Shown here: positions 8,212 to 43,260 of the stretch, one piece after another
Numbering within the stretch: the stretch's first letter is position 1
How the letters are laid out: the number at the start of each line of letters is the position of its first letter
Made by a program: the position numbers and the translations under genes
From: Aplysia californica
Lineage: Eukaryota
Assembly: GCF_000002075.1 (NCBI RefSeq)
Contig: NW_004797341.1
Location: 785,369-849,368 of the forward strand
Direction: 5' to 3'
Length of the DNA stretch: 64,000 nt
The notes under the pieces: model-generated
The model's input: the letters and a program-made list of their open reading frames with translations, nothing else
What the model was told of the DNA's origin: nothing
Databases searched by the model: none

Positions 8212-8494
8212 TTGCTATAACGAGCACTCGGATTCAACGAAATTTTAGGTCAGGCCCAGCGACCTCGTTGAATCCGAGTTCCACTGTAATTAAAAAAAAA
8301 CATTTTTATTCCACGAATTTTCACTGAAATTTTCCCATAATTTGGAGTAATTCTGCTAATTTGTGGAAGCACTGTGTAATTCTAATAACTTGTCTCCCTT
8401 CTTTTCTTTAGCCGTAGTCACGTTCATCGAGAAGTTGGACTCAACGAGGACAACAAGCCGGTCCCGGCAACCTCGCTGAATGCGACACCCACTG
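8212..8494. mobile_element. Two right-end fragments of pogo/Tc1-type MITEs
   Basis: ...CCTCGTTGAATCCGAGTTCCACTG|TA ends at 8286 and a related ...CCTCGCTGAATGCGACACCCACTG ends at 8494. Confidence 0.55.
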
Positions 8495-8689
8495 TGTACT
8501 ATGAACACGGGCCACCAAACTAAATGCAAAGAAAGAAATAATCAACAAAAGTCCAGGTTTGTCAAGAAGCAGCAACTGTATTCAATTCCATTTTGATTCA
8601 ACAGCAGCTTACATCAACAAAACAAAATGTATTAAACCAATTAGAAAAATAAGTCAGCAAGGACAGGTGAACACTTAAAAATTACGGGT

Positions 8690-10041
8690 TCTAAAAATGC
8701 AACAACTTTAATTAATCCATCCAAACGAAGAAGACAATAAAACACTTCAGCGAGAAATGATTATTTTTCTTGGGAAATAACCGGAACCAGATAGTCCCCA
8801 AGCTTTAGAAAGGGTGGATTATAACCCCCAACCTACCAGATTGAATTTAGACAAGTTGAGGCCCAGAAAAGCCTTTAAAGCTAAACATAAAATACTTACC
8901 AAATCAATACTTACTCTTGATGCATACTGTCGACAGTATTCGAGGATCCCAATCCTTTTGTTCCTAGAAGGCATTGTGCTTAACATCCTATGCATACAAA
9001 TGTGAGAGAGGGCAAAGTGGGTCAGTGTGGCAGCAAAGCCACCAAATCCCGCGGAGAAGGGGGCGCGTCCTTTGCATTCCTAGCCGTACTACTGAATTCG
9101 ACTCGATAAGATTTGAAGGCGACATAACAGCCGCCAGCAAAAGGGTTCCAAAATACATTTTAACCTCCTCGGTTCTGCAGCCATTGTTTGTATTTCCACA
9201 TTAAAAAAAAAAGTTTCATGACCTCCATAAGCTGAGGGCACAAAATTGATCACATCCGTCAATACCTATACCAATTAGAATCCACACTATTTATATAATT
9301 TTTTTTGTTCAATACGGTGCATATTTTCCCCCATAAACTGGAAGACAAAATGAAAATCGGAAGGAACTTTATATAAAGTGATAGGAAGAGTTAGAAAATT
9401 CAAGGGGCAGTTATAAAAGTGCACCCCCTCCCTCCTTCCGATAACCAAAATCCTCTTCCCATTTTATATTGTGCCAGTGTGGCCGAGAATCTCGATTTTG
9501 ATAAAGATCGCATTAACCCATGGTACCTGTACTGTATACTGTATGGAATGGAATCTCGACTTAGTGACCAAACCAACCCACTCCCAAGTCCTACTCGCAA
9601 CCCATAAAAAAGTCTCCATCGTTGAGTTTTCCAACGGACTCGTAAATCCGAATATTCCACGACAAAGCATCCTTTCCAATTTGCAAAACAAGGGATGGTT
9701 TCAGCCTTCTGGCAGTGTTTCCAGGCATTGCTTTGCAAGTCTCCAAGCAAAAAAGATCCATTGCTAGGTGTCTACATAGAAAAAATGTTGCATGTGATTC
9801 ATGCTTATTCAAATTACATGCTCATTCCTTCAGATCCCATGATTTCTTTATCCATTCCTTCCAATGATCCTAGTCCGTGTTTGTTCCGATTTCCATTCCC
9901 AATTCAGAGTCCAATGCATCCTCCTTCCAATTTATCCATTCCAAATCCATAATGCCTATAATCCAAATCCAATCCATTTCCTTTAGCCTTAGATTCCTTC
10001 CCTTCCAATCTTTTCCAATCCTTATCCATTTATGCATGAAA
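8690..10041 (-). other. SRSF1: Predicted terminal non-coding 3'UTR exon of the SR gene
   Basis: Strong acceptor CTAAC-ACTTTCTCTTTCCATTTTTTCCTTCTCATAG| at 10042, with a GGA-dense 5' part. Candidate ATTAAA at 8707-8712; the 3' end is uncertain. Confidence 0.55.
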
Positions 10042-10637
10042 CTATGAGAAGGAAAAAATGGAAAGAGAAAGTGTTAGAATGGCATCAAATAAACCTTTCA
10101 CATTGTTCGTCCTACTTTCAAAAGTTGACAAGAGTAGCAAAACCAGAGAATATCTCAAATGAATAAGGACACATAACTAAAAATGTATGACAACATGGTG
10201 ATCTATTCCAAAATCAAGCCGATATGGAGTTCATTAAAAAAAAAAAAGTAGGGATGCACAAAACACATTAAAAAGTTCAATAACATGAACAATAAAATGA
10301 AATGCAGTGCATGAGCAATGGTCAAAAATGTAATATTGGGGAAAAATTGACACAATGTCACAGAGAGCAAAGGTTACACATTTCTAAAGTACGGCCCCTT
10401 TCCTAAGACATTATACAAGCTTGCCCTTCAAGACTGTGCACGACAGACTTTCAAAATAAACCTATTTCCAAAAAAATATGCTTGGAGCTCCTAAATGCAT
10501 GGATGACAGCTTGATGGAGAGCAATACAGACCCATGAAACAATTGTGACGAGTATAAAAAAAATGGTTAAAAACAATAAAACAAAACAAAAAAACAATCC
10601 CCCCCAGATCATGGAATCCCCCCATCCTACATCATAC

Positions 10638-10889
10638 CATTGAGGCATTCATCCTCCGATAACGTAACGACAAAATAAGGAGCCACCGATGGACGGGAGG
10701 GAGAGAGGAAGCAAGGAGACCAGACAAGGCCGCATCCTCCTCGACCACTTTAGCCCTTCCCTTGACCTCTTCCATCCATCCGACTCCAGCGCTCCATCTC
10801 CTCTGGACGGTCTCCCATCCTGACCAGAGACGTTTTAGGAGCGTTCTGAGGAGTGAGAGGAGGCGACACCATGAGAGGGGTCTACTACA
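10638..10889 (-). other. SRSF1: Predicted non-coding 3'UTR (cassette) exon of the SR gene
   Basis: Acceptor CTTAAT..TGTTTGTTTAG| (tandem AGs), donor ATG|GTATGA. GC- and GGA-rich island in AT-rich surroundings, with no meaningful ORF. Confidence 0.5.
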
Positions 10890-11290
10890 CTAAACAAACA
10901 ATATTAAGATTCATTCCCAGTGCTTTAGAATGGTGCTCTACGGTTTATAAACAAATTGATTTCACACTTGTAACAAGAGTATATCTGATGCCAACACACC
11001 AAACTTTGAAAAACAACAACAACCAAACAAAAAGCCCCCCAACAACTACCCAATAAAACTGAATTTTTGTTTTTTCACTTCCTTTCATCAGAAAATCTCG
11101 ACGAGCACAATGGTAATTTCTTTCCAGATGGTAAAACAGAACTTGCATGAAACTGATACAAACCTAAACAAATAAAAAGTAAATTAAAAAACCCAACCCA
11201 CTTTTTCCAAAGTTAAGTTTGATAAATATTTTCCCACAAGAATACTCCTGAGTTTACAATGATTACTTTACTCAACACATTACACTTTAA

Positions 11291-11986
11291 CACGCCCCGC
11301 GAATTTCCTTACGCGCTCCACCCTGACTAGCCTGCGCCGACCTAGCGTCTTTAGAAACGAGGTTACGCCTTGAAGAGACTCTGCAGCCGAGATTTTGATG
11401 TGTATAGTTATTGGAAAAAGTTTCGTCTTCCGTTTGATAATGAAACAAAATTTTTCGGGCCAGTAGTTTTAGTATTAGAGCCAATCAAAGTGCGATCGCG
11501 TTACCGACACTTCAAAGGTGCCTCGACTTGTTGAAAAGCGACACAATTGAGTTAAAAAAAAAAAGGAAATAACGATGGATTTGAGCAAAAACATGCATGA
11601 CAAATCAGATGACTCAGATTTTGATGAAAATGTTGTAGCAAGAATTTGGGGCGATTCAGATTGATCAGATGTAGAAAATCTAGATTTTAGATCTAGGGCC
11701 CGGACTGCAAGGCTGAGAGAGAGAGAGAGAGAGTGACGGGTCGGGGTCGGACACCCCGGTTGAACTAAAGTTAGAACACTTCCAACAGTTTGCGCATACA
11801 TAGTTATATTTTTCAGAAACTACATTATTTTTCTTTTTTAACTTTTTATTTCTTTCAGGATTTTGGGAATTCGTTTAGATCTTTAAAATGTGTTTTTAAA
11901 CACCTTTATTCACGGGAGGGGGGTTCCTTCCCCTTGCTTACGATCTAGGAATGGACTTCCTGTCCAGACCATTAGGGTGTAATATG
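11291..11986. mobile_element. Possible decayed piggyBac-like element
   Basis: TTAA at both flanks with CA...TG ends. Internal acidic N-terminus-like peptide MDLSKNMHDKSDDSDFDE. TIR match is poor. Confidence 0.35.
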
Positions 11987-12502
11987 TTAAAGTATCAGAG
12001 TAGGAGAAAAAAAAGAACACTATTTGTTTGCTTAAAACATGCAAAAGCAGACAAGCCTACAAGCAATTTATGAGCAGCTGGTAGTACACGGGGGAGGAAA
12101 CAAAAAACCCCCTTCACTTTCAAATTTCCCATGACAAAAACAAGCCCCTAAAAAAATCTGACTAGAACTTGACAGTTAATAGCATTCATAAAAAATACTA
12201 GCAATTTAAATCTACTCCACCAATTTTTGTTTTTAGACCCATAAAAGAAAAATGAATCTACTCTGCAAACACCATGAAAGCTGTAAGGCCAAAAAAATGT
12301 CTACTGCATGAAAAGAGAAGTGATGGAATGATCATTTGACTGCTGCTTATGACAGACATATAACACCCTTTTGTCATTGAAAACGAAAAAACAAACAACC
12401 CCCCCAAAAAATAAAACCCCTAAATCAAACCCACCCCCAAGTGTACAAAACATACTCTAAAAAACATTCCCATCAAAATCAGGAGAGAAAATATCCCCTG
12501 AA

Positions 12503-12643
12503 TCATTTATAAGGAGAGTACGAACGCTCTCTATCTCTAATTGGAGAATATCTTGGGCTGCCTCTAGAGCGTCTTGGCGAGGGGCTGCGACTTCTGGACG
12601 AGCGGGGGTTGTCTTCCTTCACACGAATATATGCAACCTCACC
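12503..12643 (-). CDS. SRSF1: SRSF1/SRSF9-like SR protein, coding exon 4 (end of RRM2 plus short RS domain, stop)
   Basis: CAG|[11 protein letters not shown]...[13 protein letters not shown]...YK*; phase 0. Confidence 0.93.
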
Positions 12644-13311
12644 CTGTGACGAAACAACACATGATATGCTCTTCATAACATCGGGTGTCATAAGTTTACA
12701 TGCAATGAACCAAGAGTACAAAAATGATCTCTTTAAATTGAAGTTCCATGACGGGATTAAAGATTTTTACGCTATTGATTCAACACAAACTTTCTCTAAA
12801 ACAGATGCACTGTAACCTGTGAAATCACAACATAAAAATAAGTATCCTACTACTGTTTATTTGATTATTTATAACAACCGGACATTCTCAAAAAGGAACA
12901 ACAAAAGATAGAACAAGCACACTGGCTAATCATGGTTAAAAAACAATGGGGTAAAGAACAAATTTTAACCAAAGGATATCCATTTGTCTTAATCATAACC
13001 CATGCTGTGTGAAAGTTTTCTTTTGCAATTCGACAGGCACTTTATCAGTAAATTAAAGTACCCAATGAAACCCACGGTAATAAAAAACGAACAACAGTAT
13101 AGACCTGCACCTGAAACTCAGCCAAGGCTAGTCCGGTCCACCAAATTGTTGGCGCCACAGATCACTCCCTGGGCAGCATTCTGGGCCTTGATGAATATGG
13201 GCACACACCTCCAAATCAAATGATAAGAGTTCTCCCGAAAAAGTCCAAGACTAGAACCTTGAAAAAAAACCCCCAAACAAACAAACCCATCCCCCCATTA
13301 ATATTACATAC

Positions 13312-13484
13312 CTCATGAGACCTAAACTTAGTGTCATCCAGTTTCCTGACAGCATACTTCATGTCTTCTTTGCGTAGAAACTCTACAACACCTGTTCCGT
13401 CTTTGAACACATCTGCATAGCAAACATCGCCAGCTTCTCTCATGTGATCCTTCAAGTCCTGCCAACTGCCACTCGGAGGCAGCC
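13312..13484 (-). CDS. SRSF1: SRSF1/SRSF9-like, coding exon 3 (pseudo-RRM)
   Basis: [26 protein letters not shown]...KFRSHE with the SWQDLKD signature. AAG acceptor, GAG|GTATGT donor. Confidence 0.96.
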
Positions 13485-13616
13485 CTTGAGACATGGGAAG
13501 AGTAAAAGATAAACCCTCAGCTAACCACCATTAGGCCTGCAGCATGACACCAAACATTTCTAATGAGTGACAGCTCCTACATAATCTCTACATTTTACAC
13601 ACTGGTGATCATAACT

Positions 13617-14504
13617 CAGACCTGCCACTCTATGAAATCTAAAAATCAGGATCTAAGAGTAAAAAAATCGGGATCAACGGCAAATCAGTCATAAGGGGCA
13701 CTGGGGAATGGGGGTCCTGGTTCCCTTTTATGAGGCAAGTATGCAAGAGAAAACTTTTGCAGGGATAAGTTCATGTTTGGGCCCCTAAATAGAGAGAAAA
13801 GTGAAAGACAGCATACACGTACTCGAGTCGGAGTTGGATAGACTGGGGGAGCGCAGGCTGCAGTAAAGCTGAAACCCTTGTGGTTTTGAAAATAGCTGAC
13901 ACACAACCCTAATCATCCATGCTAAAAGCCCGCGTTTTCATACAGTAACAACGTTTGACTTCCATCGTATATACACTCAAGCCCCCCCCCCACCCCCGAA
14001 AAAAAAATCGCGCCAAGGTTGTTCATTTCTTTCCTTTTTCTTATTCTTTTATCCTCAATTAGTACCTGTATCACGGCACGCACAGCCCAAGTGTCAAAAC
14101 AATACCCCCACCTCCTCCCCCGGTCAAGTCCTGAAAAACACCTCGACCAATGCGACCGGTGTGAACAAACTTTGTTGACCCCGGCAGCCGACGGTCCCCA
14201 GTAGATCTTGAGCGTATCCATGTCGGAATTCAAGATCGATGCTACGTCGGTTTAAGTTGAAATAACGTGAGAGAGTCAACTACTAGATTTGGTACAGATG
14301 CTTTAGAAAGTAGCATTCCAAGTTCCTGCCGATAAAAGGTCTAATCGATGCTTCCAAGCAAAAAAGATTGCAGGACTTTTCATCTTTTCCCCTAAGAATC
14401 GGACGCAACCACAAAAAATCAGGATACTGGCGATCGAAATCGGGAAAATCGGGATGCTTAAGATTTGTGGCAAAAAATCAGGATATTTATGAGTGGCAGG
14501 TCTG
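13617..14504. mobile_element. hAT-like MITE with 6-bp TSD
   Basis: Perfect 14-bp TIR CAGACCTGCCACTC; ATAACT duplicated at 13611-13616 and 14505-14510; subterminal AAATC(A/G)GGAT repeats. Confidence 0.85.
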
Positions 14505-16753: not shown

Positions 16754-17463
16754 NNNNNNNNNNNNNNNNNNNNNNNNNNNNNNNNNNNNNNNNNNNNNNN
16801 NNNNNNNNNNNNNNNNNNNNNNNNNNNNNNNNNNNNNNNNNNNNNNNNNNNNNNNNNNNNNNNNNNNNNNNNNNNNNNNNNNNNNNNNNNNNNNNNNNNN
16901 NNNNNNNNNNNNNNNNNNNNNNNNNNNNNNNNNNNNNNNNNNNNNNNNNNNNNNNNNNNNNNNNNNNNNNNNNNNNNNNNNNNNNNNNNNNNNNNNNNNN
17001 NNNNNNNNNNNNNNNNNNNNNNNNNNNNNNNNNNNNNNNNNNNNNNNNNNNNNNNNNNNNNNNNNNNNNNNNNNNNNNNNNNNNNNNNNNNNNNNNNNNN
17101 NNNNNNNNNNNNNNNNNNNNNNNNNNNNNNNNNNNNNNNNNNNNNNNNNNNNNNNNNNNNNNNNNNNNNNNNNNNNNNNNNNNNNNNNNNNNNNNNNNNN
17201 NNNNNNNNNNNNNNNNNNNNNNNNNNNNNNNNNNNNNNNNNNNNNNNNNNNNNNNNNNNNNNNNNNNNNNNNNNNNNNNNNNNNNNNNNNNNNNNNNNNN
17301 NNNNNNNNNNNNNNNNNNNNNNNNNNNNNNNNNNNNNNNNNNNNNNNNNNNNNNNNNNNNNNNNNNNNNNNNNNNNNNNNNNNNNNNNNNNNNNNNNNNN
17401 NNNNNNNNNNNNNNNNNNNNNNNNNNNNNNNNNNNNNNNNNNNNNNNNNNNNNNNNNNNNNNN
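16754..17463. other. Assembly gap (N run)
   Basis: Ns. Confidence 1.
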
Positions 17464-41937: not shown

Positions 41938-42037
41938 NNNNNNNNNNNNNNNNNNNNNNNNNNNNNNNNNNNNNNNNNNNNNNNNNNNNNNNNNNNNNNN
42001 NNNNNNNNNNNNNNNNNNNNNNNNNNNNNNNNNNNNN
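41938..42037. other. Assembly gap (100 N)
   Basis: Ns. Confidence 1.
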
Positions 42038-42473: not shown

Positions 42474-43260
42474 TTCATCATCATCAATGCCTTTCACCCC
42501 TGGCAGGGTATAGGCCACATACAAGCTCCTTCCATTTATCTCAATCCTGGGCCATCCTTCCTAGCTCGTTCCAAGTGAGCTTCATCTCTCTCATGTCCCT
42601 TTCCACACACCTCCTCCATGTCTCTCGTGGCCTACCCCTGCCTCGTGCTCCCTGTGGGTTCCATTGCAATGACTGTCTTGTGATGTTTCCGCTGGGTTTT
42701 CTGAAGGTGTGTCCCATCCAACGCCACTTTCTTAGTCCTATTTCTACTTCTATAATCCTTTTGTCCTGTCCTTTCCCATAGCTCTTCATTTCTTATTCTA
42801 TCCTGCCACTTAATTCTTAGGATACTTCTCATACATCTGTTGATGAAAGTCTGGACTTTATTCAGCACTATGTTGTCTTCCAAGTTCCGCAGCCGTAGAG
42901 GAGCTCAAACTTGACATTGGAAATAAAGAGTCGAATCTTGGTGTGCACTGAAATGTTGCTTGCTTTCCAGACTTTTGATAATTGCTCGAATGCTGACCTT
43001 GCCTTGGCGGTTCTTGCTTTTACATCTGCCTCAATTCCACCTTTACTGTCGATGACACTTTCAAGGTAGGTAAAGGAGTCCACTTCTTCTAGGGGATTTT
43101 CTTCCACTGTCACAGCAGGATTTGACACTTTTCCTAGCTTCACTACTTTCGACTTGCCTGGGTGTATACGTAGGCCAACACTCCTTGATAGGCTGTTGAG
43201 TTCCTTGATCTTTTCTTGCATCTGAGCATGTGTGTGAGAGAGCAGTGCAAGGTCATCGCA
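42474..43260 (-). mobile_element. 5'-truncated RTE-clade LINE
   Basis: DDLALLSHTHAQMQEK...FTYL..LLYGCGTW...WRWMGH..WNPQGARGRGRPRETW; (GAT)n tail; frameshifted. Confidence 0.92.

Follow-up and report, generated by a model that had tools for sequence, protein, structure and literature searches.

A dense, single-copy array of GGA triplets at the head of the terminal 3'UTR exon of an SRSF1-type gene in Aplysia californica, a candidate self-sensing splicing enhancer

Introduction

In mammals, unproductive splicing is an established means of SR-protein homeostasis; the cis-elements through which SRSF1 senses its own level are less clear. Negative autoregulation of mammalian SRSF1 (SF2/ASF), with splicing of 3'UTR introns, was reportedly described by Sun et al. 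in 2010. Poison exons regulated through clusters of a factor's own binding sites are found in SRSF3 (exon 4), SRSF7 and Tra2-beta (exon 2).

According to passages of three papers, human SRSF1 promotes the splicing of its own 3'UTR introns, which leads to unproductive isoforms (PMC9262138, PMC4529898, PMC2953442). The exon junctions of these mammalian introns are described in part of one of them as overlapping ultraconserved elements (PMC2953442), and the only cis-elements for SRSF1 self-sensing given in the cited passages are these junction elements and Sam68 sites (PMC9262138, PMC4529898, PMC2953442). The relevant section of another paper states that RRM2 of SRSF1, a pseudo-RRM, binds GGA through its SWQDLKD helix, that affinity rises with more GGA and that GGA frequency follows eCLIP peak rank (PMC7813835). 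Poison-exon autoregulation of SR and Tra2 genes is presented, in the passages cited here, as a general principle with evolutionary flexibility (PMC4379411). Searches of the literature brought up no account of a pad dense in GGA within the 3'UTR of SRSF1.

Here we report on a 3'UTR intron of Aplysia californica whose downstream exon begins with 27 copies of the exact triplet read by the pseudo-RRM. The window is the whole stretch of DNA that was analysed, 64,000 nucleotides of contig NW_004797341.1 (assembly GCF_000002075.1), and all coordinates are positions in it. A preliminary description, made from the letters alone, had proposed a multivalent binding pad for the gene's own product, acting as a splicing enhancer, a translational autorepressor or a retention signal.

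Gene structure

The features of the locus, in the order of transcription, are as follows.

13312 to 13486, minus strand: RRM2 (pseudo-RRM) exon with SWQDLKD, by translation; the X2 record spans 13311-13486
12503 to 12643, minus strand: last coding exon as far as its stop, 46 residues followed by TGA at 12505-12503
10638 to 12502, minus strand: 3'UTR segment of about 1.87 kb between the stop and the 3'UTR donor; X2 contigs 10638-11477, 11564-11674 and 11645-12645
10701 to 10830, minus strand: second GGA/GGAG cluster, smaller than the pad, about 60-190 nt before the 3'UTR donor
10042 to 10637, minus strand: optional GT..AG intron within the 3'UTR, 596 nt, with donor CAATG/GTATGA and acceptor ttttttccttctcatAG/T; spliced and retained forms
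8558 to 10041, minus strand: terminal exon, 1,484 nt, from the acceptor to the poly(A) site at 8558
9821 to 10041, minus strand: GGA pad, the 221 nt that open the terminal 3'UTR exon, by counts and shuffles

Judged by its translated exons, the minus-strand gene is an SRSF1 SR gene of the animal type, which agrees with the SR gene named in the preliminary description. Its RRM2 is identical to human SRSF1 RRM2 (PDB 2m8d) at 53 of 58 residues (E 4.8e-34), and the SWQDLKD helix, for which that description had named the GGA recognition stated in the cited part of PMC7813835, is intact and identical. The same exon also matches RRM2 of SRSF6 (E 1.9e-11). A Gly/Arg hinge is present in an open frame that ends in QYRVLVSGL followed by the hinge (about 16440-16240), and a C-terminal RS domain is present as the RS tail read in the last coding exon. 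The coding joint falls at 12642/13311, which with 'cut +1' is 12643/13312. Exons were read individually. The first RRM1 exon was not seen and may sit in a masked run of N.

A paralogue search of the same genome with the RRM2 exon as protein query returned the gene itself only. A degenerate WQDLKD pattern, which split motifs would escape, had 7 matches in the genome, 1 of them a genuine pseudo-RRM exon, that of the gene itself.

Transcripts of the 3'UTR

At the acceptor of the 3'UTR intron the intron-exon boundary reads ttttttccttctcatag/TTTCATGC, with a pyrimidine tract of 15/17. The joint 10041/10638 (CT..AC on the plus strand, GT..AG on the minus strand) is carried by 1 poly(A) RNA read in X19 and by 1 X2 contig with a depth of 26.4, and the strong acceptor that had been read directly before the pad is therefore one that is used. 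The retained form is represented by an X2 contig at 10013-10667 with a depth of 11.1, and read depth within the intron is 4.5-8.7 in X19/X20, with 1 junction read. Spliced and intron-retaining mRNAs are both made.

The terminal exon is spanned at 8575-10042 by an X2 contig of 1,485 nt, and poly(A) tails (T30) before 8558 were present in 173 reads of X19 and 165 reads of X20, with a depth of 100-114 in the bin 8497-8693. Depth drops off at about 9876. These transcripts place the pad in the last exon and on the transcribed minus strand, both as initially described. Between the stop and the exon junction created in the 3'UTR there are about 1,865 nt (about 1.87 kb), which is more than about 50 nt. 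The pad, at about that distance past the stop, holds no ORF, again in keeping with the first reading.

In the upstream part of the 3'UTR a highly repeated element occupies about 11255-11845, and X1 word depth runs in the thousands at 11255-12042. Counted in 100-nt bins, the second GGA cluster has 8 GGA in the bin 10800-10701, with a further 2 in 10900-10801. Ahead of the cluster, at about 10846, stands an acceptor-like cctcctctcactcctcag, which would fit a 208-nt cassette at 10845-10638; no joint at this acceptor was among the transcript-read joints listed. A search against Rfam 15 gave no match at gathering score, the scores for mir-320 (24.5 vs 55.5 bits) and mir-328 (26.3 vs 70) both being far below threshold.

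Motif density and copy number

The minus strand of the pad contains exactly 27 GGA and 0 TCC in 221 nt, where the preliminary description had counted about 27 in about 210 nt by hand. The mean for the minus strand of the 64-kb window is 2.88 GGA per 221 nt; the runner-up at 42557-42777 has 17 GGA and lies in an RT-like open frame, and the third-ranked at 10600-10820, with 16 GGA, falls within the same SRSF1 3'UTR. The base composition of the pad is A83 C16 G69 T53, and mononucleotide shuffles of it gave 7.9±2.1 GGA (maximum 16, n=5000). Dinucleotide-preserving shuffles gave 15.1±2.06 (maximum 22), 0/5000 reaching 27 (z 6.0), so the density first described as far above background stands out both from the strand mean and from these shuffles. 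Against the latter, GGA is the most over-represented trinucleotide of the pad, followed by TGG (z 3.2) and AGG (z 2.6).

The triplets occur mostly in the context (A/T)(T/A)GGA(A/T), as TGGA (14), GGAA (13) and GGAT (11), and the pentamers TGGAA and GGAAT are present 6 and 5 times. The other cyclic triplets of a putative GGAAT unit number 16 (TGG), 16 (GAA), 11 (AAT) and 10 (ATG); GGA is 1.7-2.7 times commoner than these, which argues that the conserved unit is GGA and not the pentamer. Successive GGAs are spaced by 3-16 nt, a spacing of 3 occurring only once, and the first lies 14 nt past the acceptor; the motifs span 14-215 nt from the 3' splice site. Over 14 pads, U is favoured after GGA (168/283 sites). 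A C at -4 or +6 of GGA, which would serve RRM1 according to the bimodal motif in the cited part of PMC7813835, is not enriched in the pad (6/27 vs an expected 4.4±1.6, P 0.24). The pad RNA is predicted to be nearly unstructured, with an almost unpaired centroid: its MFE is -23.2 vs -28.3±2.9 for shuffles (z +1.77), and 193/200 shuffles fold equally well or better.

In the organism's own 927-Mb genome, the stretch 9700-10160 (461 nt) matched only itself at E<=10, in a search that skips simple repeats and very common words. TRF with a minimum score of 30 gave a single weak period-6 row in the pad (9940-9976, 37 nt, score 31), and repeats within the pad are limited to short families of two or three copies. 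A satellite or repeat family was rejected on the lack of a fixed head-to-tail unit, on the single copy and on the GGA spacings of 3-16. The absence of a fixed repeat unit had been part of the preliminary description; it had also named a multicopy or satellite segment and a lack of minus-strand transcription as findings that would speak against it, and at the sequence level the segment is neither multicopy, nor satellite, nor silent on that strand. GGA density by itself is not unique in the genome: in a background sample of 20 x 10 kb from the same genome (200 kb, including 37,859 N), densities of 25 or more GGA per 221 nt were reached at 2 loci, both period-3 purine microsatellites of the (GGA)n or GAGGAG type. 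The non-tandem type of pad with T/A-spaced GGA was not seen in this 200-kb sample. A single polymorphism is listed inside the pad, at 9830, too few for a test of constraint.

Related genes

Relatives were SRSF1-like metagenome contigs found with the RRM2 exon; the 3'UTR was compared with 78 loci, and a stop was found in 50 species-level clusters. A density of 17 or more GGA per 221 nt was reached past the stop in 14/50 clusters, and in 10/24 of those that extend 1000 nt or more beyond it; 36/50 and 14/24, respectively, are without a 3' pad. The antisense triplet TCC reached this density in 0/50 clusters (maximum 13). Among the 64 trinucleotides, GGA was the most surprisingly clustered in 8/25 clusters and among the top 3 in 13/25. 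An acceptor-like signal within 25 nt upstream of the pad start was found in 6/16 clusters examined vs 4.7% of random positions (binomial about 6e-5), and in four relatives (L030, L031, L033, L068) a pyrimidine tract and AG are kept before the pad in assembled transcripts, as in the retained form.

Loci without a 3' pad have an intronic GGA cluster 350-1000 nt upstream of the RRM2 exon, with at least 12 GGA in 21/33 genomic clusters and at least 17 in 4, and with at least 12 of the antisense triplet in 0. In L077 and L104 the cluster is followed by TAG/GTAAGA, and in L060 and L056 an acceptor-like tract lies ahead of it; by these signals the intronic clusters have a poison-exon-like layout. The thresholds (17 and 12) and the rules for pad start and acceptor were all chosen after the data were seen, and many clusters of the intron type come from one closely related group and are hence not independent.

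The 3'UTR gave 0 blastn matches vs the 78 loci. The head of the exon is locally similar to L031 (score 45 vs 20.4±2.9 for shuffles), and the mean column identity of the alignment is 54%. An element of the ultraconserved type was rejected on the 0 blastn matches and the lack of long near-perfect identity. Pads recur in related genes without sequence conservation, GGA density alone being kept. The conservation in orthologues that the preliminary description had suggested looking for therefore holds for the feature, in 14/50 clusters, and fails for the sequence.

Interpretation

Of the preliminary reading, the gene anatomy stands: an SRSF1 gene, a used acceptor and a transcribed, single-copy terminal exon. 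Of the three modes of action named there, the comparative data favour the splicing enhancer over translational repression and retention. We lean towards the view that the clustered pseudo-RRM sites enhance an unproductive splice in the 3'UTR from within the exon, and that the gene thereby limits its own output in a negative feedback like that of mammalian SRSF1. This view starts from direct observations: where the motifs lie and how densely, an intron with its two isoforms, a poly(A) site, a GGA-reading helix that is conserved, and pads that recur in related genes; the binding of protein and its consequences we infer. The pad would offer about 27 low-affinity GGA sites to the pseudo-RRM of two-RRM SR proteins, above all to the encoded SRSF1 orthologue, in RNA that is predicted to be single-stranded and that opens the terminal 3'UTR exon. 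With abundant protein, many copies would load on the pad, which would then work as an exonic splicing enhancer, promote the acceptor at 10041 and cause removal of the optional intron 10637-10042. Splicing would leave an exon junction about 1.87 kb past the stop codon, and by analogy with mammalian SRSF1 the spliced mRNA may be unproductive, through NMD or a related fate, which would close a negative feedback loop. Multivalency would steepen the response.

The resemblance to mammalian SRSF1 AS-NMD lies in the orthologous gene, in an alternative intron inside the 3'UTR far past the stop and in the coexistence of retained and spliced forms, the retained form being the one seen in assembled transcripts of several relatives. 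Unlike the mammalian elements, which were compared by description, the present gene is without BLAST-level conservation and keeps only GGA density, and decay of the spliced form and its dependence on the protein would here follow by analogy. The pad is similar to the SRSF1 pseudo-RRM GGA enhancers (Clery et al.; cited part of PMC7813835) in its GGA core, exonic position, nearness to the regulated 3' splice site, predicted single-strandedness and identical SWQDLKD; typical enhancers have one to few sites, whereas the pad has 27 in 221 nt, and the flanking C for RRM1 is not enriched in it. With SR/Tra2 poison exons it shares a cluster of cognate motifs within what would be a regulated, unproductive exon of the gene for the factor itself, and a location that shifts by lineage (3'UTR type vs intron type among the metagenome loci), although the regulated unit here is a terminal 3'UTR exon and not an internal cassette with a premature stop. 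The UGGAA- and GGAAU-like words recall (GGAAU)n satellite III and (UGGAA)n SCA31 RNAs (cited part of PMC7151548), by analogy with which the pad may form a multivalent platform for SRSF1/SRSF9; those RNAs are long multicopy tandem arrays, while the pad is 221 nt long, single copy, aperiodic and inside an mRNA.

Some observations point away from the enhancer reading. The spliced form looks like the major one in X2 (26.4 vs 11.1), which is unexpected for a rapidly degraded isoform, contig depths being a poor measure; and the acceptor already has a good pyrimidine tract, so that the need for an enhancer is not obvious. The lack of a 3' pad in most related clusters, and of enrichment for the C preferred by RRM1, weighs on the same side. 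As for self-sensing, GGA specificity is common to other pseudo-RRM SR proteins.

The pad might instead act after splicing, a shuttling SR protein being recruited to the 3'UTR of the mature mRNA to lower translation, alter export or stability, or retain the RNA in the nucleus, with autoregulation independent of splice choice. Being exonic in both isoforms, the pad is part of all mRNAs that end at the distal poly(A) site, and an open structure is predicted for it; the cited part of PMC4529898 names translational control and nuclear retention as further layers of human SRSF1 autoregulation, and GGAAU/UGGAA-repeat RNAs gather SRSF1 and SRSF9 in nuclear bodies according to the cited part of PMC7151548. 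We nevertheless consider this unlikely, since it leaves unexplained why the pad abuts an acceptor here and in 6/16 related clusters, and why in other lineages the GGA cluster sits in an intronic, poison-exon-like segment that would be absent from productive mRNA; that layout favours a splicing role over a cytoplasmic one. Somewhat more improbable in our view is that the pad is read mainly by another factor, as a regulatory input and not as a self-sensor, be it another pseudo-RRM SR protein of the SRSF4/5/6/9 type in cross-regulation or an unrelated (U/A)GGA(U/A)-binding protein. This would suit the match of the exon to SRSF6 RRM2, the GGARG motif common to SRSF1 and SRSF9 (cited part of PMC7151548), the lack of enrichment of the C preferred by SRSF1 RRM1 and the favoured U after GGA, a preference that is not assigned to SRSF1 in the cited papers. 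Yet it was with the SRSF1-type RRM2 exon that the pads were found, and they occur repeatedly in this gene family at two different non-coding positions, the pattern expected of self-regulation, and the pattern search gave no second WQDLKD-coding exon in the genome, split motifs aside.

Least probable by far, and already disfavoured, is a functionless pad, either a decayed pentanucleotide or purine microsatellite or a neutral low-complexity stretch. GGA-dense low-complexity tracts do exist in this genome, parts of the pad look like TGGAA/TGGAT units with the weak period-6 row, and the one polymorphism in it says little on constraint. However, the pad as a whole is without periodicity, GGA outnumbers the other triplets of the unit, the enrichment is strand-specific in a single-copy stretch, and the pad adjoins splice signals. 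In addition, related genes without a BLAST-detectable shared 3'UTR have the feature in comparable positions, and never in antisense.

Conclusions

In this gene family the sequence of the pad turns over while number and placement of the motifs persist, and the locus lends itself to studying how the steepness of feedback depends on the number of motifs. If the pad acts after splicing or via another factor, it would still be a clear natural multivalent RNA platform in an mRNA. As a tentative and rather doubtful extension of the self-sensing enhancer, GGA pads may be an ancestral concentration sensor of the animal SRSF1 gene: a degenerate array, kept by selection on motif number and not on sequence and able to shift from the terminal exon of the 3'UTR to an internal poison exon or back, which would count SRSF1 via multivalent pseudo-RRM binding and switch the transcript to an unproductive splice. 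If this is true, invertebrates would have a readable cis-code for SR-protein homeostasis, in contrast to the opaque ultraconserved elements of vertebrates.

Gene organization and transcription

The SR gene is encoded on the minus strand of the window, and its coding exons were read singly, not as a joined coding sequence. Because its RRM2 exon is identical to human SRSF1 RRM2 (2m8d, solved with GGA RNA) at 53 of 58 residues (E 4.8e-34), the gene is assigned, from sequence, as an animal-type SRSF1 orthologue.

Features of the SR gene and its 3'UTR
Exon with the RGG hinge, minus strand, open-frame reading
13486-13312, minus strand, RRM2 exon, translating to 58 residues
From 12643, minus strand, last coding exon, 46 residues and then TGA at 12505-12503
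From the stop (12503) to 10638, minus strand, upstream 3'UTR part, transcript evidence
10637-10042, minus strand, optional 3'UTR intron of 596 nt, GT..AG, joint 10041|10638
10041-8558, minus strand, terminal exon of 1,484 nt, first 221 nt being the GGA-rich pad

The first exon(s) of the gene (RRM1) would be expected in a run of N at 16754-17463, and a second such run occurs at 41938-42037. High-copy repeats are present at 11255-12042 (in the 3'UTR), 13422-14200 (the intron preceding the RRM2 exon) and 8300-8496 (just past the poly(A) site), with word depths in run X1 of hundreds to tens of thousands, and of about 57 elsewhere.

Four sequencing runs (X1, X2, X19 and X20) were placed on 5,901 letters of the window. 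X1 had a flat depth of about 57 over exons and introns alike and behaves as DNA. X2 consists of contigs totalling 40 million letters, its own label being only a guess at RNA; it was taken as a transcriptome because two spliced joints of the SR gene occur among its contigs and because 40 million letters are too few for a 927-Mb genome. Over the gene, the raw poly(A) RNA reads of X19 and X20 map to the minus strand; they have poly(A) tails, and a loose T30 before 8558 (plus strand) in 173 reads of X19 and 165 of X20 places the end of the minus-strand transcript at 8558.

The preliminary description had put the pad at the head of the last exon, directly behind a strong acceptor and free of any ORF, and the transcripts bear this out. 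The joint 10041|10638 (CT..AC on the plus strand, so GT..AG on the minus) was found in X2 at a depth of 26.4 and in 1 read of X19, about 1,865 nt beyond the stop, so that the pad lies within the 3'UTR. Minus-strand transcription of the pad is seen in the X19 and X20 reads and in an X2 contig of 1,485 nt spanning 8575-10042. X2 also contained the coding joint 12642|13311 (cut +1), a contig (10013-10667, depth 11.1) that keeps the 596-nt intron, and further 3'UTR contigs at 10638-11477, 11564-11674 and 11645-12645. Depth inside the 3'UTR intron was 4.5-8.7 in X19 and X20. The dominant form differed by run type, spliced in X2 and retained in X19/X20; since contig depth and a 3'-biased library are both unsound measures of isoform ratio, we conclude only that spliced and intron-retaining forms both exist.

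Several local irregularities were recorded. Within the pad, X19/X20 depth drops at about 9876: bin 9876-10072 has 12.4 and 8.4, bin 9679-9875 only 0.15 and 0.52. An alternative 3' end, priming within the transcript at GGAACAAACA or truncation of reads by repeat skipping could account for this. Reads are heaped (bin 9285-9481, depth 10.1 and 8.3) just upstream of an A8 run (gaacaaaaaaaatta) at 9290-9310 (minus strand), which is likely due to oligo-dT priming within the transcript or to a minor poly(A) site. An X2 contig at 12616-12753 (minus strand, depth 13.6) holds the last coding exon and about 110 nt of upstream intron before it ends, and could represent retention of part of the intron, use of another acceptor or a break in the assembly. 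In the distal 3'UTR (8722-8806), X2 carries 21 additional nt behind 8806, most RNA reads have TT inserted behind 8745, and about half of the reads show C>T at 8722. The sole difference listed between individuals or runs within the pad is 9830 T>C, in X1.

Properties of the pad

The pad (9821-10041, minus strand; A83 C16 G69 T53) contains exactly 27 GGA and no TCC in 221 nt, in agreement with the earlier hand count of about 27 in some 210 nt and far above the minus-strand mean of 2.88 per 221 nt across the 64-kb window. The runner-up windows reach 17 (16 on recount, 42557-42777) and 16. The open frame at 42557-42777 (minus strand; ...RWMGHTFRKPSGNITRQSLQWNPQGARGRGRPRETWRR...) looks like the C-terminal part of a non-LTR element reverse transcriptase. 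Mononucleotide shuffles of the pad gave 7.9±2.1 GGA and dinucleotide-preserving shuffles 15.1±2.06, with a maximum of 22 in 5000; relative to the latter, GGA shows the largest excess of any trinucleotide (z 6.0), followed by TGG (3.2) and AGG (2.6).

As first described, the array has no fixed repeat unit: successive GGA are 3-16 nt apart, a spacing of 3 occurs once, TRF returned just a weak period-6 row of 37 nt, and a repeat-word search found nothing more than short words in two or three copies. Nor does it belong to a repeat family in the genome search, in which the 461 nt around the pad matched only themselves in 927 Mb at E<=10 (simple repeats being skipped by this kind of search). A 200-kb sample from other parts of the genome (37,859 N) held two loci with at least 25 GGA per 221 nt, so GGA density by itself is not unique to the pad; each of the two is a (GGA)n or GAGGAG-type microsatellite of period 3, and this small sample contained no aperiodic, T/A-spaced GGA-dense stretch.

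The predicted fold of the pad RNA is weak (MFE -23.2 kcal/mol vs -28.3±2.9 for dinucleotide shuffles, z +1.77), with 193 of 200 shuffles folding as well or better and a nearly unpaired centroid. An Rfam search of the pad yielded two microRNA matches only, both far below threshold.

A second GGA/GGAG cluster lies at 10701-10846 (minus strand), 60-190 nt upstream of the 3'UTR donor, with 8 GGA at 10800-10701 and 2 at 10900-10801 (100-nt bins). Ahead of the cluster, at about 10846, stands an acceptor-like cctcctctcactcctcag that, with the donor at 10638, would delimit a 208-nt cassette exon inside the 3'UTR; the placed reads and contigs list no joint at this acceptor.

Comparison with related loci

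A metagenome scan with the RRM2 exon gave 80 loci, none with the human residues at all five positions at which human and window differ. Two loci that look vertebrate-like (L037, L100) were excluded from the comparisons below, and the remaining 78 formed 65 species-level clusters at 95% nucleotide identity in the RRM2 exon; in 50 of these a stop could be assigned behind the YIRVKED-type exon.

Conservation in relatives held for GGA density and failed for sequence. At least 17 GGA in a 221-nt window after the stop occurred in 14 of the 50 clusters (maxima, by locus: L030 24, L031 26, L033 18, L041 28, L052 19, L053 20, L062 19, L065 18, L091 18, L068 20, L087 20, L109 23, L098 18, L105 19), while the antisense control (TCC) had a maximum of 13 and reached 17 in none. 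Where at least 1,000 nt follow the stop, 10 of 24 clusters reach 17 and 14 do not. Because the threshold of 17 was chosen post hoc, we also ran a motif-free test, in which the densest window of each of the 64 trinucleotides was compared with its own rate in 25 regions (24 clusters and the window). GGA ranked first in 8 regions, vs about 0.4 by chance, and within the top three in 13, the other 12 being without special GGA clustering. With blastn, the window 3'UTR had no match at E<=1e-3 among the 78 loci; thus motif density recurs, not sequence. The exception is the exon head (nine sequences in the multiple alignment), where L031 aligns over the pyrimidine tract, AG, TTTCA.. and about 150 nt of pad with a local score of 45, vs 20.4±2.9 for mononucleotide shuffles, a lenient null for motif-rich sequence. 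Across the 14 pads (283 GGA) the context is (A/T)(T/A)GGA(U>A)(U/A).

Splice signals were compared in 16 clusters, L035 and L040 in addition to the 14 that have a pad. An acceptor-like site, defined by the rule of an AG with 13 or more pyrimidines among the 17 nt before it, lay within 25 nt upstream of the pad start in six (L030, L031, L033, L041, L052, L068), against 4.7% of positions in those regions (binomial P ~6e-5, with rule and pad start both post hoc); L040 and L087 have a similar layout by eye, yet fall below the rule. Transcript-type contigs, which read RSHEGE over the coding junction, account for several of these loci; they keep the pyrimidine tract and AG, and the assembled form therefore retains a 3'UTR intron, like the productive human SRSF1 isoform (PMC9262138).

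In loci that lack a 3' pad, GGA is often clustered within the intron, 350-1,000 nt ahead of the RRM2 exon. Upstream sequence of 600 nt or more was present in 33 genomic clusters, about 20 of which encode nearly identical RRM2 and are close kin, not independent; of the 33, 4 reach at least 17 GGA (L060 20, L077 23, L102 17, L104 20) and 21 at least 12, with antisense TCC reaching 12 in none; the window's own intron at this place lacks such a cluster (maximum 9). TAG|GTAAGA follows the cluster in L077 and L104, and an acceptor-like tract precedes it in L060 and L056. On these signals, these intronic clusters have the putative layout of an internal poison exon. The dense blocks of L077 (4251-4610, 23 per 221 nt) and L104 (659-950, 20), which share the donor context, would fit an orthologous poison exon with a stop at its 3' end. 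L056, L070, L084, L088, L095 and kin share an alignable intronic block (TTTCTGGATATA..CTTGAGATGGATA..CTTGGGATGACAAGTTA..CTGGGA..CTCTGGATCTGGATC; 12-13 GGA), at about 350-610 nt before the RRM2 exon, which has the look of an internal exon that is conserved and regulated in their SRSF1-like gene.

Proposed function

According to PMC7813835, GGA is recognised by the SWQDLKD helix of SRSF1 RRM2, and a higher GGA number raises affinity and allows RRM2 sliding. Human SRSF1 reduces its own level by promoting splicing of its 3'UTR introns into unproductive isoforms (PMC9262138; PMC4529898), ultraconserved elements overlap the junctions of the human 3'UTR intron (PMC2953442), and unproductive splicing of SR genes is described as conserved, yet evolutionarily flexible (PMC4379411). 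SRSF1 and SRSF9 are gathered by GGAAU and UGGAA repeat RNAs (PMC7151548). The pad may accordingly be viewed as a multivalent platform on which the gene's own SRSF1-type product would assemble; once loaded, it would act as an exonic enhancer, and the resulting removal of the 3'UTR intron would exert negative feedback on the gene.

We regard such an enhancer-type self-regulation element as somewhat better than an even prospect. The preliminary description had proposed a binding pad for the gene's own product serving as splicing enhancer, translational autorepressor or retention signal; its observation is confirmed and its interpretation partly supported. Against an enhancer count the pad's acceptor at 10041, already pyrimidine-rich, the spliced form, not obviously rare, and the C at -4 or +6 preferred by SRSF1 RRM1 (PMC7813835), which is not enriched around the pad's GGA (6 vs 4.4±1.6, P 0.24). 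Reading of the pad by another protein is quite doubtful. Action in the mRNA once splicing is over seems unlikely to us: GGA clusters adjoin regulated splice sites at two distinct places in the gene, for which reason a self-regulatory enhancer is favoured over a purely cytoplasmic role. Neutral low complexity, finally, is very improbable.

Among the main texts covered by our literature search, none describes an SRSF1 3'UTR with a GGA-dense pad. SR genes in which a regulated, unproductive splice unit carries clustered motifs for the gene's own product are a kind already known; what may be new here is this element, its persistence as a number of motifs while the sequence itself is not conserved, and the two alternative positions that it takes in relatives.
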